Counted from the first letter of the stretch, positions 38,301 to 62,600 are shown. The stretch: 64,000 nt of DNA from Tubulanus polymorphus (GCF_964204645.1 NC_134032.1:11210275-11274274), one strand, 5' to 3'. Numbers and translations: made by a program. Notes: a model not told the origin generated them from the letters alone.

Positions 38301-41300
38301 CGTTGTCCAAGTTACACATGACGGCGTCGCGAGCGTATAAAGTCAACCCAAGCATCAAATTCGAGGTTTTTATTCACAAAGTCGACGGTTTGTCGGACGA
38401 CCATAAAATCGAAACGCAGCGTGATATCCATCAGCGGGCTAACGACGATTTAGCGGACGCCGGATTAGACAGTTTACATCTCAGGTATTGTGCGAAATAG
38501 ATTCGAATGAGTTCCCCTGTTTGACATTTACTAAAGTGCGATAAGTTTCCAAATGAAATGCAAAGGAAATTGAAAATAACGATTAAGGTATTGCCAGCCA
38601 GTGGATCCTCAGTTGCCACAGTAGCTTTGCCAGTTCCAGAATAGGAAAGGTCTGAATTCGCATTTGTGTCACCTAATATTTTGTTAGTTCTCCATTTCAC
38701 TGATTCAATGACACCTAATGGACCCTCAATTGCCACAGTAGCACTGCTATGTATTTCTCCATTACCTTAATGTGAAATGCTTATTTCACACTAGGACATG
38801 GCAGTGGTACACATAGCATTTGGTTGTTAGGGGGGCAAAGAATAAACAACAAACAACCCCAATATAGCGATTCTTCTTATATGTCCCAACAGAATCTCTA
38901 GTAAACGTTTAACAAAATGCTTGTCAATCCCAAGTGAAGGAATTTCAATACAGAAAGATTTTTAAAATGGGCGCAAATACAGTAGAACTGGTTTAATTCG
39001 GATCACCTAGCACTGGAAATTTTGTCCAATCAAAAAGAAGTCCGGATTATGTTCTCTCGTTTGAATAGAAATAACCTAGAGGGGACTGGAATTTTTGTCC
39101 GAAATAAGTGAAGATCCGAAAAAATCCGATCTGAATTAAACGAATTGTACTGTAGACAAAATTTCTGCAGGGCAACAGCCCCTGCTGTCGCACTGAGTAC
39201 AGCTTCGTAGGACTGCTTGGTGGATCCTCGAGGTGCCATGAGCCATAATTCATGATGACTGAATATGTTTTCCCACTGTTTATATTTCAGTTTTCATTTG
39301 ACGAGTATATACGACCACTCAATATTCGAAGCGTTCAGTAAAGTTGTGCAGAAATTAATTCCGCAATTGCCGACGCTGGAAAATCTGCTCAATATTTTCA
39401 TTTCGGTGAGTTGCACCCTACCCCTCGCCGACAAAGGTCTGCCGTGGTCAAATTCAGCGTGGCCACTTGTCTGGAAATCAGCGAAAAGTCAGTGAATTTT
39501 CTTTTCTTCAGAAAAGTTAGGGAACACTGACTTGACCTGGAATCCTGAAAAACATAGGGAATCAGAAAAATCTGGCAAAAATCAGGGAATTTGACAAATT
39601 TCACCAAAAACCTGGAAAACTCGGGAATTCGGATAATGTTATTAACCGTGTGTCCTTTATCACTTGGTGATTCAATCAATAATGAGTGAACTATAACATT
39701 TCGAACCTAGAAATTAATCCGGTTCACTCACGAAATTTTGTGTAATCACATAGAAAAGTAAGGGAAAACATGAGGGATTTGTAAATGGGCGGAAAGTGGT
39801 CACCTCGCAAATGAAACCATGGACAGCTGACATTCAGAATACTTTTTCATGTGACAGACTCTATTATCTGGTCTGCTTGGGGAAAACAATATTCACCGAT
39901 ATCGATACGTCGTTTATTTTCGTTTGCAGAATTCTGGTATTGAGAAAGCATTCCTGTTCGACGTGGTCAGCAAAATCTACATCGCTACCGACAGTTCACC
40001 CGTTGATATGCAGTCTTACGAATTATGTTGTGATATGATCGATGTAGTCATCGATGTTAGCTGTATTTACGGGTGAGTGTGTGATGTTCTACATCCCGAA
40101 ATTCTTTATCCCTACAATCTGACGCCTCCTGCCAAACCCTATCTCAAGACTCCAACAGTTGTTCGACTTTTATGCAGTTATCAATCCGCTACCTGGACCC
40201 CCTCAGATATACGATACTTTATCAACATTCCTGCAAGTTTTGATCTTCCACCCCTTCACATTTATTCAGGACATGTTGAATTGAAACTTCTTTTGGGTGT
40301 ATATAGGACTCCTCCTAGGGTATACTGCCGAAAATGGCTTTCCTTAGTACCTCCTATGTATGAAGGATGTATGTGTATGTTGTGAATTCACAAATCGACC
40401 ATTTATATTGTGAATATGGATGATCCTTACCAACAGTGCTTTCTTTTTCTATCAAGAAATGCTTGAAGTGCTAGATTTTGCCTCAGTCTACCTACCGAGC
40501 CCTGGGCCCAGTTTCACGAAGAAGTTAAACTCAAATATTTGGTGTAATTGCCATTGGTTACTTCATGTTTTCAATGAGGACAACAATTGAAACTTAACTG
40601 ATTTAAGCTTAAACTTTTTCGTGAAACCGGGCCCGGCTTGATTTATCTATTTGACAAGTGTACATGGTGGAGTAGACTTGCGGCCCTTGAAATAGTCTCG
40701 ATAGGAAAGTTTTCTAAGCTTTATTTGTGTGATGTTTTCTTTTTCCAGGGAGGACACAGAAACTAGTGCGTTTGATACGCAATCTAGTTCGATAATACGT
40801 TTAAACAACGCGACTATTTTATATCTACGAGAGGTGAACAAGTACTTAGCTCTAGTCTGTATATTACGTGAGGATAGTTTCGATAGGCAAGGTACGTATA
40901 GATGTTACGCACAATTAAATTATTTGACATGGCATTGCGTTCATCGCATGTCATCCTCCCGTGGTAGCGATTTGAATCTGATGATACGGAGAAGCCTCAT
41001 CTACGGCATGATATCTGCCTGCTGCTGACCACGGACTTGAGAGAATTTGCATTTAGAGACCTTCATTTTATAGTGGACTCCTCTAGTATTACTGCAGAGT
41101 TTCTATGGAATGACTTCAACTGGGTCTATAATTCTAGTCATTGTTCTCCATATGCTGGTATTTGAGTAAAAGGGCTGCATCCATTGTGAAGTTAATGACA
41201 TTGTGGCTGCTGAAGTAGCAAGGCTTTCGATGCCGAAAATACAGAAATTTAAGCTTCATTTCGGTGTAATCGTCTTCTATTTTTCATATTAGCTCAATAT

Positions 41301-41674: not shown

Positions 41675-42839
41675 GCGCCACCTTCATTATAGAATAGGTA
41701 GGCGTGTATCGTTTGCGAAGAACGCCATCTGCTGTACACGAACGAATTCTGGATTCTCGTATTTGATGCTGATGATGATTCGCGTTTATTTATGTAATCA
41801 AGGGAATTAAACTTATTGTCGACAATTGACGATGCATGATTGGCAGTTTAATTGGCCAATTAATTAATTGATTAGTGGGCAATTAGTCCGGCGACAATTC
41901 TAGAAAGTCTTGAATTATGAATTTGTGTTCGAACTTTTGATTTTGTGGCTTGTACTTCAAATGAAGTAGTTGAATTGTTGTTGATGGAGCTTTAATCCAG
42001 AAAAAAATTTCGATCCTATAATTTTCCTCAAAGATGTGGAAATTTCGGTCTCCGAAATGAAGAACGTGAACAAGGCGTCTTTATTAAAAGGATACGACTT
42101 GTTTACGATATTAAACAATACTTAATCCAGAGAAACGAAAGGGTAGTAAGGGATTATAAAAGGTTGCGAAAACATCTAAAATCGTTTACCGTATTGAAAC
42201 GGAAGTTGAAAAGTGATGTTGTAAATATCATTATTATATATAGCGAAGAAAAGATTATAAATGAATTCTGTGTAAATCTTTAGGTAAAATATTATTAAAA
42301 ATAAACCTGTAAAGTTTATAAGTGAAAGAAATGTTTTGATTTCGTCATAAGCTTTTATGTTAAACGAGGAATTTTGCCTTGTAACTGGTATGAGGATTTT
42401 TAGGTGGATATGGTCTATTTGGAGAGCAGTCTTCTGTTTGATGTGGGGAATGGTTATCATCGGGACTAGCCAAAATTAGTTATAAGTGGATGTCACAGGA
42501 GTGCGCAGTTGATGTTTAGGGGGAAAAGTAGCTTGGATCCTCCCAATATTCCAGCATCTTTATTTGATAAAGAATATTCGGAAAGAAGTTTCAGAAGCTG
42601 AACTCATGGACAGGGGCTCAAGTTTGGGGTGAAATGATAGCATAGATGGTCCTATATATCCGAGGTACTATTACCTGGGTTATTGGATTATACTGGATGA
42701 TCTAAGCTACTATTCACCCCCAAACTCCAAATACGAGCCCCTGTGCTCGAAACTTGTACGACTGGGTCCGGAGGAAGCTGCAGCCCGCAAAACCACAAAA
42801 TTGCGCGATGAAATGCTGAATATTGTACGGTGCTGCCAC

Positions 42840-43104
42840 CACAAGTTTTACACACGCTCCATGAATGAACGGTTCAAGTAGGTCATTTGATGACGTTTTA
42901 AGGTGTGGCAACCAATCAGCCACATGGAATACGGACACACCCGCGTTCGGTGACCTCGCTGAACAGGTGCCCGTGAGGAAAGCCCCGAGAACTGAATCCG
43001 ACCCGAGATTTTGTTCCCGAATAAAGCCCGTATTTTTGCGGCGATTCAGTTCGAATTTTGCTCGCAAACAGTCGCCGAAACCTCGCGGAATACATTTCGG
43101 GTAT
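42840..43104 (+). promoter_or_regulatory. Probable native glutaminase promoter/5'UTR, displaced by the transposon
   Basis: CpG-rich relative to flanks; CRE-like TGACGT at 42891 and CCAAT at 42912-42916. Removing the TSD-bounded insert joins this region to 50586-50602 and the GLS ATG. Confidence 0.5.
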
Positions 43105-43485
43105 AAATTGAACTTCACCAAGAACCTTAGTGTCTGATGTACCACAGACACTAAGGTGCGAATGACATTTTCTCGATACTCTTCAATCACTGTGACTTTA
43201 AACCACCAGAAATCCAGTTTCACCGAACCGATTGTCAAAAATAAACTCTCTTTACAAACCTCAAACATTCAGTTTTCTTATTAGTGTATTTATTCGGAGG
43301 AGCTTTGATTATATTCCGTGCATGATGCGATATTATTGAGGAAATTGCACAAACGACGCCATTTTCAACTTTTGAAATCAGCTCGATAGCAACGCCCTCG
43401 AGCGATCTATATTGTTACTCGGGAGACTCGTACGGGAGTGTACGGCATCGGAACAGACACTGGACGGGCTGATTTAATTCCTAGG

Positions 43486-45754
<2,269 letters not shown>

Positions 45755-46028
45755 TGAATATTGAATAGATTATCCCCCTGGTAGGCAACACTGGGTTGTA
45801 AAATTAATAGTAGAAGCTCTGCCTGTTATTCGCTCGTCACTCCAGGAATGGACGTCGAAAGTTATCGACGGAATGAAACGGACGGAATGCGCAAAAGGTG
45901 TAGCTGCTGCGAGGCTTGCAGGATTTCATGTGGATGATTGATAATTGATTTTTGATTTTTGAAATGAAATACTTTATGCTTCAAATATATAGATGTTGTA
46001 TATATGATGGCTCAAATATTGTAAATAA

Positions 46029-49000
46029 TTACCTCAATTGAATCAAAGCGTCCATATCACGACTATGTTTTTGTAGTTTCTTTTTCAACTTAGCAGCCCC
46101 ACGATCACTTATTGTGGTTATTGGCTCGTAATCTGGAAATCCTCGATGATGGCGGCCAGGAATCCATTGAAAAAGATTGTTTTCCTCATACATTTCAATG
46201 AATGCGCGAACCTTATCAGTGTAAGCATTTTCACCGTGCGATTCTAGAAATTTAATAATAAAAGACGATTTAATTTCGGCACGCTCTAGATCATTCCAAT
46301 CGATTACATATTCGTCAATTTACCATTATTCGAATAAACGTATGTGTCGGCGATGTTCGTCTCGTACAACCTATCAATGTTTTTCGCAACTTGCCCTATC
46401 AACTGACTAGCTCTGGCTACAGATGCATCGGTGTATCGCCCATTCAGCTGTTTGAGATTCTCTGAAGAAACGATAAGTAAAAATATAGATAAATGAAATA
46501 AATTTTATGAAAATCAATGGACTGTTAAATAAAACCGAGTGACAGTTTTCATACCCTTGAATTGGCCGTTCAGCAATTCATTGACGTAGTCCATTGGGTG
46601 ATTCTTACCGACCCCGCCTACAACATTAACTGTTCGATTCCATGTAACTTCCTTGCAGATTCTTTCTGGCCACCCACCATTGAGACCTACAGCAATTACA
46701 AGAAATCATGTAAAATAAAGTTCAAATTACCAGACGATTAGGCTTATAATAATATCACACCTGCAAGGAGGTCATGGCCAAGTATCAGGTATTTGTTGTG
46801 ATTGCCTAAATGAAAATTAGGCATATCAAGCCTCCAGTGGTCAATGATTGCCGCTCCATCTCCTTCTCTCACGGCGTCGACCCGACATCTATCGTTCAAT
46901 ATCGACCACAGCAATCCGATCGAATACAAAAAAACGCGATCTTTTGACGATTCCGATCTGCACATCTCTGAACAAAACCAATCCGAATCTGAAATAGATA
47001 CATTAAATTAATAAAAACTCAAAACAGTTAATTAAAAGTAAACTTGGTGTGAATTTAAACGGTACCTGTCGGCTTTGTGGATAACCCGATACAATCGAGA
47101 TGAAGAATGCCATTGTATATACATTTTTGTCCATTTTGGCATTTGATTGTCGGTTTTGCCTGCACAGTTTTACATACACAAAATATAGACGCCTTTGAAT
47201 TTTCGCATTCCTTGCAGCACCACCAATCTCCTAGAATTTCTCCATCAACTCCTACGCAGCTCCAGTGGAACCATTTTCCGTTTTCACATACAGGATTGCT
47301 GCATTCAATCATAGGTTCGTCTTCTAGGTCTATTATTAAAATCTTATTCTGTTCAATCACTTAGCAGGAATGATTGGAAAAAATCAAAATTGAAATGAAA
47401 TGATGAGAAAAAAAGATTAAGATTAAGTACCTTCTTCGCATAAACAGTAAAATGCTGTTTCATCTTCGTTCGGTACAGATACAACGCGGTTGCAGTCAAC
47501 TGGTAACCATACCGTATGGACGATCTGCGTAGCCAGCTCATCAATTGTCTTGGATGTTTTCTTTTCGCAAATGCTTCTCGCCAATAAACAAATGAGCCCA
47601 TCACCCACAAACGATAAAAAATTACTCACCTAAAAACCGATAATTTTGATTTTTATCAATACATTAAATTTTCCATTCTCTGAATTTGATAAACTTTAAT
47701 CTCACTTGATTGAAATTAGCCATGACGTCTTTCTTCAGCCTTTTGTGATGGAACACGTTTTTCATATGGAACAGAGTCCCGCGATCTCGTTGGCTTTCTT
47801 GTTTAAAGAATTTGTCCATTATGTCCTAAGAATTAGCATTAAACATTATACATTCAAATCATATTTCACACAAAGTTTTATTACTAGAAAATTGATTTTC
47901 GAATGGTAACCTGAAGGATAATTCCACGTTTGTGGAATTCTTGCGGGACGACAGTCAATCCTTCTAAGCGGCTTAGCTCGTTACCAGCGCCCATTCTCGC
48001 TCTCGACGCAGATTTCGACCTCTCGACCGTCATGCCATCGCCGTGACATGGAATGGTGTAAATGCCATTTGGTTCCGTTGGCACGTATTTCGCTTGCAGG
48101 TGTTCCAATATGGCGATAGTTCCAGCCGTAGTAGATGGGTCCTCCTCTATCACACCGATGTTAATCTGCAAATATATTTGACATAAACAGGTATTACTTC
48201 ATGTTCATACAAGGAGGACAATGAAGGCTTTATGAAAGTTCTTACTACTTTACTCTTCTTTGACATTGCAGCCGAATAACGATGAAGGATGTGCTCGTTC
48301 ACAATTTCATTTTCATAACATTGAAAATATTTCTTGAGCACACGTTTTACCAGTACGATCATCCGGGCCTTCAAATTTTCTAAGTCGTTCTGATTTGGGA
48401 GGAATGTTGTGATTGGCATTTGTGTTGCAGGTTTGTAATGAAAATCGTCTATATTTTCAAACGTAACGCGGTTTACTGAAGCAAACGCGAGCGCCCAAAG
48501 CATCATTTTGTTTTGTGTGCGTCCTTCATAACGGGCTAAAGAAAGTTTCTGCACATTATCCCAACAAAGCGAGTAACCTGAGGATGATCAAAAGATTTTA
48601 AACATGTAGTTAATATTTGATATATATATATATACGTAAATTGTGTAATGCACGTATTACTGGTACAATCAGAAACATACTTGTTATTTGGCTGGTTTTC
48701 GCAGCGAATTGACGCTGAAAGAATTATAGATATATATATATATACTTATTACAATGTTAATGAAAAAAATTCATGTGACGTTTAATGAAAAAATAGGTTT
48801 ACTTCAACATTTTGTTTCATGTGCATGATATCTTTGTCGTAAGTTTCTCGAATCCTATCGACAACCTTCCGCGTACATACAGGTCCGAAGCAAACTCCGA
48901 GTTTAGAGAAGCATTGATATAGCTGAAATCAAACGGATTTATGCGATTGCATTATACATGTATCAACGAAAAAAACGATGTAAAGTGTAAATGCATCTTA

Positions 49001-50143
49001 CTTGCTGCCTGCATCCACTTCGCCACATCTGAAGAGAATTGATTTCCTTCAAAAAACGAACTTTTCTGCAATTTCTAGAGTCTAGAATTGTTGACACTAC
49101 GAACCCGAAGCGGTTATCCGGTGTTTGTGAATTTCTATGAATAAAAATCACTAAAATGTTACTATTGAATGCTTGAGGAAAAAAAACAGCAAACTTCAGA
49201 TCTCATACCGTTTTCCTGCCATTAACGATAACAATATACTTGTTAATGCGGGCATTGATCCTTTGATAGCGCCGACTGTTTCAGACCACGAAAACTGTTC
49301 CATATTTTCAAGCGAGGCTTCGTCAAAAAGTGGCGATTTTGTTTGCATGAAGGCCTGCTTCTCTTTCTTGATGAGTATACTTACTACAGCAAGTAGCTGA
49401 ATAAATGCAACCTTACTCTTTTTTAAAAGTAACAATATCGCTCCTTTATAATTCGAGTGGCCGATCATTTTTTGGGCCTGGTGTCTGAAGTTTTTCTGGA
49501 ATTGATATAATATATGATATGTGTACATACCATTACATTTGATTTTAATCTAAGAACTATATAGCCCATTGGTCTTAGTCAATTTCAGAAAGGCCTGATT
49601 ATTTCAGGTACAATCTGAACTCAAATGAATAGTCTATCCTACCACAGAGATTTTTGTGGAAAAACCAGCAGCATCTCCTCCGCCTTGTTCAACACTTATT
49701 CGTTTTGGAAGCCTAGACGTGGAGCATTCAGGTGAATTGTGTAGAGATCGTTTTGTTCCCCGATTGAATACCGGTATCGAATTATTTCTAGACTGAATTT
49801 CAACTTGAAATAAACAAAGTTTTGCGAAATAAGATCGTGAAATGATTCACTTGATAAACATTTTTCTGTGTTTGAAAAGTAATTGATTAACTTATTTTGG
49901 AAACTCACCTTTGATCTCATTTAATTCTCTTGTTTTTTTACTATATGCTTCTAAAAGTTTAAAACATGTGTAACAAACGAATTCCTTTTCGGGGTGAAGA
50001 CAAAATCCGTATTCCAAGCAGACCCTTATTACTGAAAAACCCTTAGCAATCTCACGTGTTTTGTGGAATCTTTTCCACCCTTTCTGCTTAGCTTCGAAAT
50101 TGCCGCCGCAAAATGCGCACTCGGAAGGCGACGAAGGTGCCAT
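46029..50143 (-). CDS. Academ-type transposase with N-terminal CxxC...CxxC module and two internal PHD fingers, ~968 aa, 15 exons
   Basis: Exons 50143-49909, 49803-49643, 49549-49209, 49134-49002, 48922-48803, 48714-48681, 48577-48246, 48165-47911, 47825-47706, 47629-47431, 47329-47066, 46988-46761, 46686-46555, 46461-46324, 46243-46029; all phases compatible. Motifs WDN, HGDGMT, EFH, REGDG, H..KY, WNRTVN..G..G.N.PMD..NE..N, LF..IPGR.H. The exon 3 acceptor is ambiguous. Confidence 0.85.
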
Positions 50144-50602
50144 CTTTCAATAAACTACGGCAAAATACCACTCGACCGCATTGGAATCCCGGTCGGTTCT
50201 CTTGATTGACAGCCGGATGTTATTGTTGCGGGTTGCCACGTGACATTCTATCATCGGCTTGAACCGATTTTCAGATTCTAAATTGTCTTTCCTTTTTTCA
50301 TTTGAAAACCAATGCTACCTAATGGTGTTTTATCCTCAAACAAATATATTGAACAAACGCATGTTGTCATAAGGTTAGTGTAGATAGTTTATTTATCAAA
50401 ATCGGTTATTTACAAGCTGAGATATCGCAGTTTGAACACGGACAAAAAAGCCGACCAAATTCTGGTCGGCAACTGTACAGCGAATTTGAATGCACGCGTC
50501 TGGGTGGTTGGTTACACGAGGATCGTAGAGCGACGGAGATCACTGGTGGAGACAACCACTGCCAGTGCTGGGTGAAAAATTGAACCTGAACCCGGGCCTA
50601 AA

Positions 50603-53600
50603 ATGCCCATTGTACGCGCAATCTGTAACCAACTGAAGCTCTCTAATCTTCTACGATGGCGCCGGGTGATTCTTCAACCATCATCAGGATTTTTATGCGA
50701 GTCGAGACAAGCGAGCTCGTTTAATCGGGGACCCAGCGATCTGACACATCATGAACCAGCTGGAGAAGTAACCAGGTGAGGATTTCTAAATTTTAAATTG
50801 ATTGCCTGATCTTGATATCAAACTGCACGAGAAGGCGCCAAATGAATGAATGCTGGCTACATGCCAAATCTCCTACACCCGACCATCATAAATTTGTGAG
50901 TGCAGTCTCGTCAATTAATTCTGAAGGCTGTGACCTACATTTCATTCATTAAAGACTATCAGTATTTTAATTAGGTCAATTACGACTTCGTGATCAATTG
51001 CTGTTTGAATAGGGTAACTCATTATTATTCAGCTGTCTGTGGTAATTAGTTTCACTTTTCGGATATTTTCACAATTAAAGCCATCTGAGCATAAAAAGTT
51101 TACCACCAATGATTCGGATAAGGTACCATTACACCACCAGTAACTAGTACAAAAATAGCCTGAGAGCTTAGCTTCAGGCACTTTTCAGGGGTTGAGGAAC
51201 AGGGACTGGGTCATTGCTTGTTACTTACCGGTCAGGCTACCTAATCATTGGTGGTATTAGCTTTTATAAACGGATGGGTTTGAAAGTATCCGATCGTGAC
51301 ACTAAACCATAGACAGGTCGAATAGGTCATTGCGAGTATCTTTGGGCACTCGTAACAGATACAATTTTAGTCTCGCAGATAGCTTAAAAATTTGACTCTG
51401 ACTTATGACCAAAGCTTATTTTGGATCTTAACCAAGCTTACAGCTTCTGACAGTTTTATACCAGTTTTGATCATTTTGTTGCCAATCTAACAACCCAAGT
51501 CCTGTCGAAATGCGGGGACCGCTGAGCGAGGAGGCTTTAAAAAAGATATGAATATATATAATATGTTTCACTATGCATTTACTTTTCAAATTATCTTGTG
51601 GAGGACCCCAAACCCCCTAGGAAACTTTCCTCTGCGCGCTTCAGTTCTAACGAACTTAAAACCAGTCTAACTAAGCTTGCTTCGGTAATGTAGCTAATCA
51701 AACAACCTGAAACCGGTCTTAACGTCTTTAATAACCATATTACGATTTGCAAATTTTTTTCACGCGATTTTCTCTCTAAACGCGTTTGTATTTTTTCAGA
51801 GATTTGACCAATCCTCAAAAATTATTCGAAACCGTCGATGAATTATTTGATTCGTCCGCAAGGTAACTTTTTCACGCACCTCCGCGTATTGGCTAACTAG
51901 AAACCCGAAATCAACGCACCGCGACGTAAAATTATTACTGGCTTTTTTTTCATCAATATCGATAACTGGTGTCGTTGAATGTTATCACGGCAAGATTGTT
52001 GTAAATATATATGCTATCGTAGATGAATTCGCTTTTTACCATTGTTTGACTCCCGTTGGAAACCAGGATTCGAAGGGAACTGGGAACCGTCTTCAATAAT
52101 GCATGCCTCGAACACCTTCTTTTTCATTCTCTCCCGCGTGCTATGAGCCTGACCAGTTTACGGTAGAATTTCACCTTTTCGATCTCAATTCCAGGCCTGC
52201 GTTCTCATGTAAATAAAATTCATCTTAGCTGCCTTCTTCCAGGGCTGCCAAATCTATTCCTGATTTTCAGTTGTTGTTAGAATTTTATAACAAGAAATAA
52301 GCCTACTGGTTTGATGCAAACAAAAATACCAGTATGAAAAATGTTACCAAGGGTCTTACTAGTGATGACTGATTAATTTGAACATTTACTTTCATATTTC
52401 AATGAAATGTTACCGGTACTGAAAAAAATTTGTTACTGATAGCACTCTTCAGAGATTGGCAGCCCTGTTGTTTGCGAAAGATAGTCGGCCCATGTTCCAC
52501 AGCGAAGACTTAAATCGAAATACAGGCTATTTATAATCTCTTTATAAGGACTAGACCTTTATTCAAAATGAGCTAAGTTCGGTCTTAAAGTCACGATTAT
52601 GGAATATGGCCTTGAATTTCGTTTTTACGTTATTCCGAGTTCACCTCGAGCTCAGGGAGAGATTGAATATTTTCGTCTTATTAGTTTGAAACCTTGGAGT
52701 TATTATTCCAACGAAATAACCACTCCAAAGTTATTGCAGACTCCGTAGCAACACCGATACCCGCCCGCAACTATCGTAGAACTGGGTTCAGATTTCAGTT
52801 TCATGAAAAGAGTTCAAAGCTCAGAATTTTGGTTGGAACTAGTTAACCAATAAAGATTATACTCAAAGAATGATACCTTGTTTCTTCTCCTAATCGGTCG
52901 TAATCAGTTCATTTCTATAACTGTTGGGTCTGTCATGGTAAAATAGATCATGCTTTGAAAATATAGTAATGTACAAGGTAAATAGGCGACTGACTGGGTC
53001 AACTTTTAAGCTCAGCAGAAGTGAGAAACAAGGTATCAATTTTATTCAGTCTAACTTAGTTAAAGAATGATGTTGGTGCCAATTTGACTTAAGCCTTTTT
53101 CGTGAAACTGGATATAGACATATATATTTTTTTTTGTTTTCGGTGGTCATTCGATGACTTATTGAATTGAATTTTATTTCAGGTTTATTTACGATTACTC
53201 AAAAAGTCACAGTCTAAACCATGTATCTGTAATAAGGTGTGTGTGTGTGTCCAGTATTTATATGTATACCTACTGATTCAGACTTATGTTTAATTACAGC
53301 TAATCGCGCTGGGCCGGGTTTCACAAGAAAAAAAAAAGATCAAATAATACCTCTCCATTATTTCAGATCCAGTTTAAATGGATTAAAAATTTTTTTTTGT
53401 GAAACTGGGAACTGAACAACATAACATTAACGGCTTTATATTTCGCTTATTAAACCAAGCCTCCCGCTTTCCCTGTCTCGTCTCTGTTTTCCTTGAAATA
53501 TTCCTAGATATGTTTTCGGCGAGTGATTACCTTTAAAAACCGTACCCGGAATCTAGAATAACGGGTCTTACAGAGACGGAGGGAAATAGAGAGCTAGGGC

Positions 53601-56600
53601 CATTTGCACGACCAAGACTTGGAAGACTGTCCGATATCATTTTGGCTTCGATAGCCAATCTTAAGACTAGTCTAAGGATAATTTTGGATCTACAACCAAT
53701 CTAAACAGAGATGCCAACTGTTCCTGATTTTCAATATTCAGTTACTATTGTATAATGAGAAATACTGATTTGATTTGTTTGATGCATAAAGAAAGATGTT
53801 ACTGAGGGTTTTACTGTTGATTACCGATTAATTTGAACATTTTCTTTCATATTTCAATGAAATGTTACTGAAAAAAATTCAATTTGTTACTGATAGCACT
53901 TTTCAGAGATTGGCAGCCCTGTTGTTTACGACAGGTAGTCAGCCCATGCTCCTCAGCAAAGACTTAATACAGGCTCTTTATAATCACTTTACAGAGGTTG
54001 GCAGCCCTGGTCTAAGTTCATTTTGGTGCTATAGCCAATGTTAACAAATCCAGCCTTAAGTAATAAAAAAGTCGCAACTGTGCAATTGGCCCGTTGGTTG
54101 GTTTTTAATCTAGTTTTGATTTTACAGAGCTTCAGATGATCTAATCGCGGACGTATAAACTAGAATGTATAATCTAGTTCATACGTTTCTCTATGATTTA
54201 ATTAAAATGTATGCATTTGTTTGTTAATATTGGTAGCAGCATGATAGAAATTATCGCCTAATTGCTGAGTGTTAACCCCCTAATTCCGACCCCCTTGACT
54301 TGTAAAAACACTGTCTTGCGCTGAACTCTCTCCCTTTGAGACTATTCTCGCTAAATTTCGGTGTTTCGATTTGAATGTTGTCGAATTTGTTGCATTTAAA
54401 GCATGTTAGACCAGTTTGGCAGCTTAATCACCAAATGAACTTTTATAAGTAACGAGCAATAGGCAATTTTACCTTTTTTCCTAAGGCAGGGTTCAACAGA
54501 CGTTCAAGGCTTCCACAGTCGCAATAAGAAACCATTGAATTCCTGCAATTTGTTTTGGTGTACGTTTAAAATGTGTCTGATTAATTTTAAATTCGCGATA
54601 AGATTTTTTCAATGAGATTTAGCTACGCATAGATCTGCGTTTTGATTTGACTCCGGAGTCATTTAACTCGATAAGAGTCGACTTCATTTTACGGTAAAAT
54701 ACTCTGCGTAACTCAAATTCCTCGGGACCGTTTCATTTTGTTTGAAATATGCAATATCTTGCAGACATGATTGCAGTTTTTCTTTAGTTTTGAATGAACC
54801 GATTATACTATGAGCAAGACGAGATTTCGAGGTATTCAAATCCTAGGTTATGCAGAGTCTTATTATTTTCAATGCCATTTATAATATTGACTGTTATTCG
54901 AGATTCTCCAGTCACCTGTTACACTCCGTCTGCCTGTGCGCTCCAGTCCGTCTGCTGTTGTTCAAACATAATAACAGCTTTTTATAATTGAAAAACCCAT
55001 TTTCTCAACCGCAATTGATAAAAGTGGTTTAATCGAATTTCTTTTTCGTCGTAAATTGATTTATGTAGTAATCGTTTTATGGTCATTTTGCCCGCATACC
55101 TCGGCCACCACCCTCCGCTTTTGGTGTTGTTTTTTGACGCCTTAAAACTTTTATGCGTTATTTTAGGGGATATGTGTAAGTCGATGTGCACTACGTCATC
55201 GGTATAAGGGTTTCTAAATAACAATCATAATTGCGGATTTCGGCGTTTATTTTCTAATAATCAGATATATTTCGTCATTCATATTTTACATTTGATAAAT
55301 CTTAATTGTTTTTGAGACGAACTGATGCATGCACAGGAGGTATAGCTCGGAGTGTTCGTACGTGGGGTTCTGAAAAATCTTGGGCCAGGTTTTACAGACT
55401 GGTATTTAATTTAGCGTGGGGGTTAACTCAATTCATTTTCAATTGAGTTAGCCCTGGGTTTAAAGTTGATACCAGTCTCTAAAGATATTACGCTTTGAGA
55501 GGGTTGGTATTGCATGTAACACTTAGAGGGAGGGGGGCTTGTTGCAAATGATCCCCACTCCTCTCCCATCTTCACGGGTTGTTTTCGCAGGTGTACTATT
55601 ATCGATAGTTGACTTGTTCAGCTGGTTTAGACTTAATTCCCGTCGCGCTTGTGACTGTTAACTAAAGAATTGCCTGTCAAGTGATCACACGATACCTGCA
55701 CGGTCAGATTGGAGCTCGAATTTGTTTTCGAATAATCGCAGTGTTTGTTTTCGTCAACTGTCAACAACCGACCGGGTGTTGACCGGTGACCGACTGTCTC
55801 ATGATTAGGTTCTATTTCACGCACAGACGGACGTTTAAACCGAAGTCGCGAAGTCGACAATACGTGGAATATGTTTTCGACAAAACACGAGCGTTTGTCA
55901 TTGAAAAGAAAGATTCCAGTCATTGTTGAGAATTGTTTTTCCCGAATTAGCTATAAGGCGGGGGTCAGTTGCACGGTCAATGGCTTAGATTGAGACCAGT
56001 CTATTAGTAGTTTTATAGCCAATATAACAACTTAAGATTAGTCTTAAGATTTAAGACATCTTTCGGTTGGCACCAAGTAGGGTCAGTTGTATCGTCACAG
56101 CTTAGTTTTGTCTAGAGTGCAACTGGGCCCCAGTTGATAGAGTTCATGGCCCGAAATCATGCAAAGTTTTAACTTCGACATCGACTTAATTTCTTCACTT
56201 ATAATGACAGCATGATTTGGGACTTGTTTTTAATGAATTTCTTAGCCTAGGTCAATCCCAAATACCACCATTAGCTCTCCCCACCTCACACTGTCGGTCA
56301 ACCTTTTCAAAAAAATTTTTCATGCTTATTTTTTCAGGGATTCGAAGGAACTACGCAGCGTCGAGGATATTTTATTCGAGTTATTGTGCGATAAAGATGA
56401 GAAAATCTCGATCAACCGATTCTTCAACGTAAGATACCGTATATATTCGTCGTTCATTCACGTCCATTTTTTTTCAAAAAACTGACCAAAAAATTCTCGT
56501 TACTCGGGGAAACGCAACAGAAGCCGTTCAAACGAAATAACTTTAAGCGAACGTATCGTTATTTTTAGATATAAATGAAACTTAGATGTTGAAACCGATT

Positions 56601-59600
56601 GTTATTTCTATACTGTTGGAGATAGGGGGTGGCGACTACCCTGGAAACGCTGAGGTTTAGTTCTTCTGTAGAATGTTTTCTTTTTTTATCGTGTGTAAGA
56701 ATTTTGGAATCCGATGCCGGGTTTCATGATGATCGTGTAGTCGGTCGGTTTTTATGGCGTATCATTCATGTCTGTCGGAATACCTTGAAACTTCAACTGT
56801 GTCTGCGGTGAGCTGTGGATGCCGGTAGTCGAGGGGAGGCTGGGAGAACGTTTGAGCGAGTTCAGCTACGTGTTAAAAGTTAAAAAAAAAGATTTAGCCT
56901 ATTATATGAAGCTGGTAAAACCCTGGACATAAGCAACCTCCGGAGTGGGGTCTGAAAATGTGGAGCATGTGCTAGGCACAGCGAATGGCCTTTAGCGTAC
57001 CTGGACGAATGTTGAAGGAATGCAAAGGAATAAACCGATTTATGAAATGCCCTGAATTCAGTGGGATGTCAATGAATATATTCATTTTAGAAAGTAGGAT
57101 GAATAGGAGAGAGTCCAAAACGAATCTTTGTCAATTTTTGATTTGATAAATCGATTTTTGTTTTAGTCATTTGAATTTGTGTATTATGTAGTTTTAATTG
57201 TACCAAAAATACGTTTTATGTATTTTTGATCGTACATATAATCTATTTTGCATGCTATGAGTGTAGCTAGTTTACTAATACAGGAAAGTTCAGTGTATAT
57301 GTGTGAGAGGAGGAGATGGGGGTCTTGGCAACTTTCCGTTATTGCTACGAGTAAATGGCCTCGATGCTGTACATGTAAACATTACAAGAACAGCCTTCAT
57401 CGTTATGTTTAACTGGTGATGAGAACGAACTGGAAAATAGAATCGTAGAGTTTGGGGTGAGGGGAGGGGTTTAATAGGTCTGTCTGACGTGACACCAGAC
57501 CCAGTCCCACACTTTGCAGCTAGAGAATAGAATTATAGAGTTAGGGGTGAGGAGAGGGGTTTTAATAGGTTCTCCAGACCCAGTGCTACGGTTAAAGTAC
57601 ATAAGGCTCGAACTTGAGCTGTTTCTGAACAGTATTTTTCTTTTATTCGCAATGTAATTTAATGCACGGGTAAATAATATGAAATTCTCCGGAGTCGGTG
57701 CCAAAAGCAAATATCACCACCAACACAAACGCACGGTTTATGAAACATTGCCAAAGGTTAAGAATGTGCGCATTGTGTCAATCAATGTGAATATGGTTTT
57801 AAAAAAAGATAGCGACAAACGAACGAAAAGTTGCTTCTAGACTCGATTATTTAAGACTGGGTGAATTCAGATGCAAGTATTTGAAAAAAAATTGACCAGA
57901 AAATGATAATAGTCGACGGAATAGTTTATGCTATTTCAGGTTCAACCCATGAAAAGCTTTTAGGGGGGTGGGGTTATTTTTATGCGCTAATGATTTTGAA
58001 TGAAGATATATTTCATCCGGTATGAACTCGCGTCGGGAGGGAGGTGCAATTGCTTTATTCACAGCACTTGAAATAAGTCGGATGGTGGGTGGGGCTCTCA
58101 AATCGTTTTTTTTTTTAAATAATTTTCGTAAATTTATTTGGACCTTACAGAGCAGAATAAGACAATCATAAATGTACAAAATGTGTCGAGGTTTCGTCCA
58201 AAGCCAAACAAGGCTGTACTCAAAGAGGGGATGAAATCTAAACACTGATGCTGACAATTACAATGAGAGTAGAGATTCCCTCCTGGATATACTAGTCAGG
58301 TACAGAACATGGGTCAGTTGAGAAAAGCCAATTGGACAGGGGGGTTTAGTAATATTGTATACTCACCGGACTAAAAATTAGGGAGGGGTTAAGTAATATT
58401 GTATACTCACCGGACTAAAAATAAGGCGGGGGAGGGTATCTATTGTCAAGGGCTCTGAAGGATCTTTTGGGAAACAAAATTTTCAAGTATTTCACACGAA
58501 ACCGTCACTATTAATTGATTCAAATCTATCATTTTCTTGGGATACTGGCGATGCAAGATCGAAGGACAAGACAAATTTCTTAAAATTCGTATTGTCACAA
58601 TATCTGTATTGATTGACGTTGTGTAATAATGAATTTACCCGAGAAGTGACTTATTGGTCGGGGTTTAGTGCGAACGTCAATCCGTAAGATTTATCTCCTT
58701 CAAAATCCAATTACTGATAGATCGATCCCCGCTCCTGCGCGATTCCTGTAATCTGCTTATAATCCAATCACTGTGTAGAACGAGAGCGGATCAATATCCA
58801 TTCCGTCTGCTGCGTTTTGAAATATTGATTAACGCGTGTTCAAACGAATCCGGCTCCAACAACTTCACAGTTTCATCGGTAACGACTAAAATGACACCGA
58901 ACTGAACGCATTGTTTTGTAGGTAACGAGTCTGATTATCAATTCTGAACCCGGTTTCAATTCTGAACAGTTCTTTTAACGGTTAAATTTGACTCAATTTA
59001 GTTCGTGTTCATATTAGCCGCGGTGGCTCGGAGACGATTTGGCTCGGGCCAAATTGGCCTTGATCAGACCCCAGTCAAATTAGGCCCATACCTAACTACA
59101 TGTACATAATGCATTCACATGTAAATCACTCACTTGTGAGGTTAGATACTTCTCTAGTAGAACCAGTTAGCATTCACACGGAATAATTTGACCCGTGCTC
59201 AAATTTGGCACAAGCCTCGTCCAACGTTTTTGGTCGGCTATGTTCGGCTTGTGTCTAACAGGCGCGGACCTATTTGGTACCAACCAGTGTGAGTGGTTGG
59301 CCCTGGATTAATTTGGCATAGGTTGAATTTGGCCCAGCTCAAAACCAATCGTGTGATAGTGGCTTTTAGTTGCAGCTGTGGCTAAGGACTCTTTGACTTA
59401 TGATATTTGAAATTCTCTGCACTTGATGTTTCGATGACCAAGTCTTATCAGTCAATGATTAAATAGAATTTATTGAAGATTGATTTTTTCCTCTTGTCAA
59501 ATTTTTCTGATATTTGTTTTGTTTTGTTTGTGTAGTTGTTACAGTCGACCGGACTGCGACTCAACGACCCGAGACTCCGTGAGTCGATGCACAATTTCAC

Positions 59601-62600
59601 GAGCGTTCAGCGACAAGTTTCCGAATTTGACGGCACGGATGGAATTTTGGTCGACCGCGAGACGTTCAGAGAGTAAGTGTATAGATGTAGATAGCGCTAC
59701 TAATATCTTCTGTTATAGGTGGCGCTAATAGAAACCCTAGTTTAAAGAGGGTGGTAATAGATAAAAATGATTAGCTAGTACATGTATTTGAAATGAGGCC
59801 AGTTTGAAAGACCTGTCTCAACTTGGCTGAGGTGAATTATCCTTGGGTTGTATTTAGGATAAAGTGGTTCCATGACTCTTAATTCTTGGTAAAATTTGAC
59901 GGAATCATCGGAATGTTGAATTATGCTGAACTTCAGGGGGACCTTAAGATCTGTTTGTTATTATTGATAGCTCATTATATCCAGTATTAAATTATCTAGA
60001 TTGTCTTACTTGGGGACGGCATTCTAAATTTGCAATAAGTTTCGAGTTCATTATAACAAGATTCCACTGTACGAAATTGAAATTAGTTCATTTTGGATTT
60101 GAAGAGTCAAATATCTTCCATTTTCGCAGAATTTTTTCAATCAATTCTAAACGCAATATCAGATTTTTGTTTGGTTTCTATTTGCGCGCAGGTGTGTATC
60201 GGATAACGTAGTGTTGATCGGTCGCGCGTTTCGCAATCAGTTCGTTATTCCAGAGTTCTCAAAATTCACCAATCAGCTCGATCAAATCTACTGGAAATGC
60301 CGTACGAACACGACCGGTAAAGTGGCTGATTATATCCCGCAGCTGGCGCGATTCTCCCCCGACTACTGGGGCGTCAGCGTTTGCACGATCGACGGACAGC
60401 GGTGAGTAAAAATGGATGCCTCCGTGAATCCCCCTATGACATTGTCAAATCATTGCCAAAAGATGGCTGTTGCCATGAACCCCCCATATGACATCATCAG
60501 TTTGATGCTGATTACTGTCAGACTCTTGGCTCTACCTCCATAAATCCCCCTATGACATCATCAAATTTAATGCTGATTACTGTAAGACTCTTGGCTCTAC
60601 CTACATAAATCCCCCTATGACATCATCAAATTTCCAAGCAGTTTGACACTTCAAGAAAAGATGACTGTTACAGCGAATCCTTCTATGATTGGATGGACAC
60701 TTGCAGAATATAAAGCTACCTCCAAAACTCCCCTTATGACATCACTTTGAATGTATTTACAAGATTTTATAAATCCCCCATGACCCATGACATCATCGAA
60801 TTATCTATATGACCCTAATATATACAAGTTCGTACCTAGTGTATTTTGAGTGGCAAGAAACCCGAAAAGGGTAGTTCTATTGGAAAAAACAATAGTATTT
60901 GCAAAAGGGCACTTTTTTCTGAGGGTCTAGGTATGGCCATAATCAGATCTATATCTACTGGGGACATGAAAGCATGTATTTTCATATATTTTCAGTCATT
61001 CAATTGGAGATGCTAATATACATTTTTGTCTGCAATCAGTCAGTAAACCGTTAAACTACGCGCTGGCACTCAGCGACCTCGGATCGGAGGTCGTACACCA
61101 GTATGTCGGTCAGGAGCCAAGTGGCGGTTCATTCAATGAACTCAGTCTTAATACCTCGAGTGAGTAGAATTTAAAAATCGGCGAAACGTCGGATATAACG
61201 ATTTTTTTAACGAATCAATGGACATTTTGGCCCAAATTTGAAACTGTAGAAGCATTGGATCGAAGTTCCTCGGTTGTTGATTTGTTAAGTTGTCTTCAGA
61301 TTCGACTCAAAACTGTTGAGTTTTTGGTGCAGAGTCTATAACTGGCTCCTGAAGTAAGACTCTAAATTGAGTTCATTCAGTTCAGGATTTTTATCAACGA
61401 TGTTTATAATTTTCTCTCGTCGCGTAGGTCGGCCTCACAATCCGATGATAAACTCGGGAGCGATCGTGATTTCTTCGCTGTTGAAGAATCAGCTGAAACT
61501 CGCCGACCGATTCGACTACGTAAGTTTACGTAATTACGATGTTTATGTAGATTACGTACATTTTCATATATAAACAGGGGCTCTCGGGGGTTTGTAGTAA
61601 GTATGACTAAGTCGGAAAGAAATGCTTACTTTTGGAAAAATAATTTAGGCTAGGCACAGATTCATGCTCAATTTTCAGGTAAGATCCTAAAAGTGTTGAA
61701 AAGCTCTTAATTTTTGGAATGAATGTCATCACAGGAATTATCCATTGACAAAACCTAATCGATGCCTATGTGTCTGTCTCAATGTTTGAAATCATTAAAA
61801 AACTCCATCTTTTGATCAGGATGAAGTTGCTCACTTATGACCTGAAAAATTGCAGAAACAGCTGAATTCAGCCTTGGTCTTACTGCTACAGACCCTATTG
61901 CTGATGTTAAAACACACAGGGGTCAGTTGCTTAAAGTTGGTTAAAGTTAACTGGTGGATGAATGCCATAGTGACAATGGAAATTGTATTGCAGCCATGCT
62001 GTTTGTCTACCTGTTGACTCGAACCAACTTTTGAGCAACTGACACCCGGAGCCTAATCTAACTGTTGAACTGGGTCCTGAAGAATTAAAGCTGATTAAAT
62101 CCATCTGCTCTGATAGACTCACTATGTACTGTATGGTTTCACTATTTGTTGCAGATTCTAGGGATGTATCGCAGACTGGCTGGTGGTGAATTCCTCGGCT
62201 TCAGCAACGCTACGTAAGTTGAACGAATATCCATTTTCGAAATGCATCTATAGTATTCCTTCGAATAATCGTGAGTAATAATAATTTGCTGATGTTTATT
62301 TTGTCGTTTCCAGGTTCTTGTCGGAACGAGAAACAGCCGATCGGAATTTCGCGCTCGGTTATTACATGAAAGAAAATAAGTGTTTTCCGGAAGGAGCAAA
62401 TCTACTGGAAACGTTGGATTTCTATTTTCAGGTACCGTATGTTCCGGTCTATAAGCCCACCCGGCCTATAAGCTGAGTCTCCTCTTCGGCCTCTCCAGGG
62501 GACAGTTGCTCAATAGTTTGTTAAATATAACCAGCGGATAAATACCATAGTAACAATGAACTTTTAATTGTCACTATGTCAACTATCCACTGGATAACTC

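Follow-up and report, generated by a model that had tools for sequence, protein, structure and literature searches.

Transposons that occupy the promoter or 5' leader of a host gene in only some individuals are well known, and the P-element and hAT insertion alleles of Drosophila and plants are familiar examples. The glutaminase insertion described here resembles these alleles in several ways: it is of the cut-and-paste kind, it is flanked by a target duplication, it lies tens of bases from a start codon, and it appears to be polymorphic. As with those alleles, the insertion would be expected to cut the link between gene and promoter. It differs from them in the type of element involved and in that its family showed no promoter preference in the flanks of the copies studied (n = 19).

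One animal sublineage of the AcademH transposons reportedly has a PHD finger in its transposase, and the transposase of the element in the window has one as well. The element is also like AcademH in having two genes, one for a superfamily-2 RecQ-like helicase and the other for a large transposase; Pfam names the transposase core only as DUF6589, and the comparison with AcademH is one by description. For the AcademH DNA transposons (Kojima, 2020, as cited in passages of PMC10045372 and PMC10799480), target duplications of 9 or 10 bp are given in a passage of PMC10045372. The family of the window element differs in this respect. Among its 16 short copies with both ends, an exact duplication of 8 bp was present in 12, one of 9 bp in two, and an imperfect one in two. 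The element encodes a helicase besides its transposase, as AcademH does, whereas a 9-bp duplication was found in only two of 16 short copies and in the window copy. The usual target duplication of the family is 8 bp.

The window is the whole stretch of 64,000 nucleotides that was analyzed. We consider it fairly probable (roughly 0.65) that a full-length two-gene transposon has recently entered the 5' leader of the sole glutaminase gene, that it is not fixed, and that it has cut off the native promoter, with expression lost or reduced. The features on which the argument depends are the following, in the order of the window:

42840-43104, plus strand: displaced upstream region of glutaminase, with promoter-like motifs; from about 42991 rightwards it would hold part of the 5' leader of the empty allele
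43105-43113: left copy of the target-site duplication, 8 bp AATTGAAC and one further matching A, giving AAATTGAAC; read in the sequence
43114-50576: DNA transposon of 7,463 bp, its ends set by more than 40 short family copies
43114-43365, plus strand: left terminal 252 bp of the element, common to the short non-autonomous copies
43486-45754, plus strand: RecQ-like helicase gene of several exons, from open reading frames, RecQ-like motifs, and weak Helicase_C matches
about 46125-50143, minus strand: transposase gene of about 12 exons, from DUF6589 matches and tblastn of the homologues P0031, P0045, P0117, and others
50144-50576: right end between the two start codons, in two parts (50144-50328 and 50329-50576)
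50577-50585: right copy of the target-site duplication, AAATTGAAC; contigs of other samples start their exact match to the window here
50586-50775, plus strand: 17 nt of leader and glutaminase coding exon 1, from the open reading frame and an RNA contig joining 50775 to 51800
51800-51862, plus strand: glutaminase exon 2, 63 nt, from RNA joints and splice sites read in the sequence
53183-53236, plus strand: glutaminase exon 3, 54 nt, from an RNA joint and splice sites read in the sequence
56338-56428, plus strand: predicted glutaminase exon 4, 91 nt, from a candidate search (EF-hand_14 positions 1-23, E = 0.086)
59536-59676, plus strand: glutaminase exon 5, EF-hand-like domain (EF-hand_14 positions 26-70, E = 8e-9)

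Direct reading showed that the left and right flanking repeats are identical at 9 of 9 positions. At fixed ends, a match of this kind arises by chance with a probability of about 6e-6 for 9 bases and about 2e-5 for 8 bases. The element starts with TTCACC and ends with GGGTGAA; the two ends have TTCACC and scattered matches in common (about 10 of the first 12 bases), which makes a short and imperfect inverted repeat. In BLAST searches with the terminal 252 bp of the left side and the terminal 248 bp of the right, each end matched more than 40 places in the genome with 85-93% identity, and all of these matches began at 43114 or finished at 50576. Most of them belong to non-autonomous copies of about 625 bp. 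With its duplication and its copy-shared termini, the stretch 43114-50576 has the hallmarks of a cut-and-paste (class II, TIR) element.

The ninth matching A of the window duplication may be a chance coincidence, and the restored empty site is identical whether the duplication is counted as 8 or 9 bp. A reading made from the sequence alone (hereafter, the sequence-only reading) had already proposed a transposon insertion, and the target duplication and the termini, at which over 40 family copies also begin or finish, show that it is real. Each coordinate in that reading was confirmed directly, including the end of the right duplication at 50585, the glutaminase ATG at 50603, and the 17 nt between them (50586-50602). 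When the duplicated target is counted, the insertion lies 26 nt upstream of the glutaminase start codon. No second haplotype or empty site was found in the assembly, where both flanks are single copy except for a small repeat at 42700-42746.

The left end of the element contains a strong hairpin at 43124-43157 (13-bp stem, fold z = -5.3). The helicase gene runs from an ATG at 43486 to a last exon at 45389-45754, with the first exon and its donor read in the sequence, and its orientation is that of the displaced glutaminase promoter. The exons of the transposase gene were mapped with homologues from a representative search, and the Pfam domains of these homologues show that its core is DUF6589 with a PHD finger inserted. 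Its first coding exon (50143-49909, minus strand) is an open reading frame that is intact in both long copies of the element, and residues 23-94 of the homologue P0117 align onto it by tblastn. In the right end, the part at 50144-50328 occurs in the long copies only, has a CACGTG at 50237, and is presumably the 5' region of the transposase gene. The part at 50329-50576 is the terminal 248 bp common to the short copies.

Only one other long copy was present in the genome. It is located in contig C10, is 97% identical to the window copy, and is without 43114-44449 and 45142-45635. No second copy of 43400-44320 exists in the genome; given this and the incompleteness of the C10 copy, the window copy is the sole complete one in the assembly. 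The element, which has this helicase and a transposase of DUF6589 type with a PHD finger, seems to have been mobile in recent times. An (AT)n microsatellite of 120 bp occupies 44330-44449 in a helicase intron, and the homology with the C10 copy begins directly after it, at 44450. Just upstream of the C10 copy (C10:5266978-5269571), there are two stretches with 77% identity to the transposase core at 47032-48244. These probably represent a diverged relative of the element family, beside the 97% copy.

Glutaminase is encoded at a single locus in the genome, on the plus strand at 59.5-63.6 kb of the window, and in profile searches both PF04960 and PF17959 matched this locus alone. The catalytic exons (60.2-63.6 kb) follow exon 5. 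Exon 1 begins its coding part with the ATG at 50603, has 173 coding nt in a frame of 58 codons, and ends in a GT donor after 50775; the encoded peptide, which is basic, resembles a mitochondrial presequence. An exact look-up of this 58-aa product in public assemblies returned no record. A 565-nt RNA contig of run X2 (record 10), with introns removed, matches 50577-50775, 51800-51862, and 53183-53237, and both of its joints are GT..AG. The coding lengths of the three exons (173, 63, and 54 nt) keep phase 2, and the next letter of the RNA contig is G. A splice leading directly to 59536 from exon 1 or from exon 3 was considered and rejected, as the phase would be wrong, and the path to exon 5 therefore runs through exons 2 and 3, which come from RNA, and the predicted exon 4. 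The only good candidate for exon 4 was 56338-56428, which has a G after the AG, is of a suitable length class, and is similar to the beginning of the EF-hand-like domain. The exons were examined singly, and the junctions between exons 3 and 4 and between exons 4 and 5 are predictions.

With these exons, the frame from the ATG at 50603 is open through exons 1-5 into EF-hand_14, with phases 2, 2, 2, and 0. The gene has the arrangement of a kidney-type glutaminase (GLS), with a catalytic domain after an EF-hand-like domain and exon 1 in frame. The claim that GLS transcripts use the exon at 50603-50775 was thereby upheld by the spliced RNA contig, with its joint from 50775 to 51800, and by a frame that leads into the glutaminase domain. 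Two stretches in introns 2 and 3 (52801-53200 and 53601-54000) gave summed contig depths in the thousands, with many alternative joints, in all four runs; they are high-copy repeats. Elsewhere in intron 2, at 52514-52762, the RNA-like run X2 had a 250-nt contig of depth 10.6; an unannotated transcript, intron retention, or a repeat could account for it.

The read data came from four public runs of one study, covering two samples, and were examined over 49001-55000. In run X1, the depth was about 30 across introns and about 15 at heterozygous sites, and this run looks like whole-genome DNA of one diploid animal. Its record 4, a 2,214-nt contig whose depth of about 32 is the normal diploid one, matches the window from 52401 down to 50577 with one difference and continues for 389 letters that are unlike the element. 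Record 10 of X2 likewise has 114 letters before 50577 that are unlike the element. The sequence-only reading had suggested looking for the empty allele in the alternate haplotype, raw reads, and related species, and these two contigs, both of which stop matching at 50577, probably represent it.

The 114 and 389 letters would correspond to the flank ending at 43104 (42716-43104 for the longer stretch), an identity derived from the position of the breakpoint and from the lengths only. At 50576 the element has an A and the left flank a T, so a read of the uninterrupted locus should break exactly there. If record 4 is collinear with the left flank, it would end at 42716, about 30 nt inside the repeat that ends at 42745-42749, which is where an assembly made with 31-letter words would be expected to break off. 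Neighboring contigs of X1 also overlap by 30.

The element letters in the reads point to the other long copy. At 20 sites over 49001-50396, the letters of X1 are those of the C10 copy, and over 49546-49848 and 50176-50325 only C10-copy letters were present and the letters of the window copy were absent. Sample S2 (runs X3 and X4) also had C10-type letters only, at low depth. At three sites within 49904-49954, X1 has both C10-type letters (depth 34) and window-type letters (about 17), and the neighboring sites are C10-type only; this may reflect a haplotype block or a third partial copy. We conclude that the insertion is probably absent from X1 and that the expressed allele of S2 is probably uninterrupted, on the basis of contigs that, in X1 and X2, prove presence better than absence. 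The predicted junction of the empty site had no exact match among metagenome contigs, as expected for an animal locus. The insertion thus appears to be polymorphic and unfixed, with other sequenced animals of the species carrying and expressing the uninterrupted gene, provided that the unmatched letters are those of the left flank.

The RNA contig also bears on the position of the promoter. Counting the 114 letters, the 9 bases of the target, and the 17 nt that follow, the mRNA leader of the uninterrupted allele is at least 140 nt (114 + 9 + 17), and we infer that transcription starts at or left of about 42991, about 80 nt downstream of a CCAAT box. Since at least 114 nt of RNA extend upstream of the site, the promoter would lie to the left and would now be 7.47 kb away, and the insertion itself would lie within the transcribed leader. 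A start at or left of about 42991 agrees with the upstream flank that had been predicted to hold the promoter of the empty allele. The insertion had also been said to separate the gene from its promoter, and the separation stands; the element is not situated between the promoter and the start site, as it lies inside the transcribed 5' leader.

The displaced flank contains TGACG at 42891, CCAAT at 42912 (in an NF-Y-like context), and TATAAA at 43102. The last of these, at the junction with the insertion, was rejected as a core promoter for this transcript: with it, transcription would begin right at the ATG, and at least 114 nt from upstream of the site are present in the RNA contig. In the 265 bp of the flank there are 23 CpG (o/e 1.40, GC 0.50), compared with a CpG o/e of 1.02 for the whole window, and 20% of 265-bp windows score at least as high as the flank. 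Of the description of this flank as a CpG-rich CRE/CCAAT region, the TGACG and CCAAT motifs were confirmed, and the richness in CpG is only modest. The displaced promoter faces the left end of the element, and the helicase ATG is at least 495 nt downstream of it in the same orientation.

Further upstream, 42700-42749 and the sequence before it form the end of a different small repeat. About 46 nt of it match dozens of loci (91-96% identity), and the matches often lie in inverted pairs with 100-130 bp between them. The repeat has the look of a short MITE family that has no relation to the main element. A plus-strand open reading frame at 40729-41028 resembles the C-terminal roadblock part of a Rag-type GTPase. 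This suggests an upstream neighbor that does not extend to about 42 kb, with 42.7-43.1 kb as intergenic sequence.

In the reading that we favor, an element encoding a helicase and a PHD-bearing DUF6589 transposase would have entered the untranslated 5' leader of glutaminase recently, by cut-and-paste. This would have left the carrier allele with its native promoter, and no less than the first 114 nt of leader, 7.47 kb upstream of the gene and directed into the helicase gene. Transcripts from this promoter would end or be processed inside the element, where they would meet the helicase splice sites and AATAAA signals. Normal glutaminase mRNA from the carrier allele would then be lost or much reduced, unless a new start exists in the right end. 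The loss of expression on the carrier allele is an expectation, as the RNA came from samples without the insertion.

A new start of this kind has the layout of the right end in its favor. As the sequence-only reading had described, the transposase ATG at 50143 (minus strand) is head-to-head with the GLS ATG at a distance of 460 bp, with the N-terminus of a homologue aligned to the exon at 50143, and a CACGTG E-box is found between them at 50237-50242. There is a second CACGTG at 50053, 185 bp from the one at 50237, and the two lie around the transposase start codon (6 occur in the whole 64-kb window); the pair may, tentatively, be a control element of the transposase gene. Glutaminase on the carrier allele could start in this right end, from a promoter shared bidirectionally with the transposase or from outward activity of the terminus, and the allele would then be functional. 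Besides the closeness of the start codons and the two E-boxes, the CpG o/e of the right end (1.17) fits this explanation, and with a start downstream of 50490 the leader would be free of upstream ATGs and the A at -3 would be kept. Starts upstream of 50490, in contrast, would add up to five upstream ATGs (plus strand, 50217-50490). Moreover, X2 carries the C10 copy but has zero depth at transposase exon 1 and at 50001-50200, so that promoter activity of the right end was not detectable in this run, and no transcript joining the element end to exon 1 was seen in the runs, which come from samples without the insertion. On balance we think that a functional start in the right end is unlikely, with some chance of being correct.

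It is less plausible still that the native promoter continues to serve glutaminase on the carrier allele, either by read-through of the element or by splicing of a leader or helicase donor to a glutaminase exon. The promoter, the helicase gene, and glutaminase all have the same direction. Chimeric splicing is known for other transposon insertions, and such precedents lend this explanation some support. However, read-through would have to traverse two convergent genes over 7.5 kb and to pass five AATAAA signals of the plus strand at 46257-46714, and the path has many upstream ATGs, four of them before 43486 alone. With a splice onto exon 2, the start codon and the presequence would be missing, and no chimeric contig was seen in these same runs from samples without the insertion. 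We regard it as very improbable that the insertion is not germline and arose somatically in the sequenced tissue or through an error of assembly. The absence of the insertion from both other samples examined and the lack of a second haplotype of the locus in the assembly would agree with it, but a precise target duplication at exactly the termini of the family is what true transposition, and not a mis-join, leaves behind, and a somatic event would rarely reach the assembly consensus.

We also considered targeting of promoters by the element family, which found no support: around 19 short copies, the CpG density of the flanks is not high (3.1 CpG per 100 nt), the values being 4.1 at a greater distance and 6.8 at the site in the glutaminase gene. 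Selection could have removed promoter-proximal copies. A bolder proposal is that the family is still moving, that its PHD finger reads promoter chromatin and led the element to an active site close to a promoter, and that the host promoter now drives the helicase while the right end drives the host gene, in a reciprocal exchange of promoters; we hold this to be a speculative idea of low probability.

The insertion is an ordinary insertion polymorphism, of a common kind, and it leaves general concepts unchanged. A silent carrier allele would mean that the only glutaminase gene of the animal has a natural knock-out or knock-down form that segregates in a wild or laboratory population, and studies of allele-specific expression could make use of it. 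The sole complete copy appears to be absent in other individuals, which makes this poorly studied two-gene family a candidate for a currently mobile element. For transposon biology, the mobility of the two-gene family would be a more useful point than the glutaminase allele itself.
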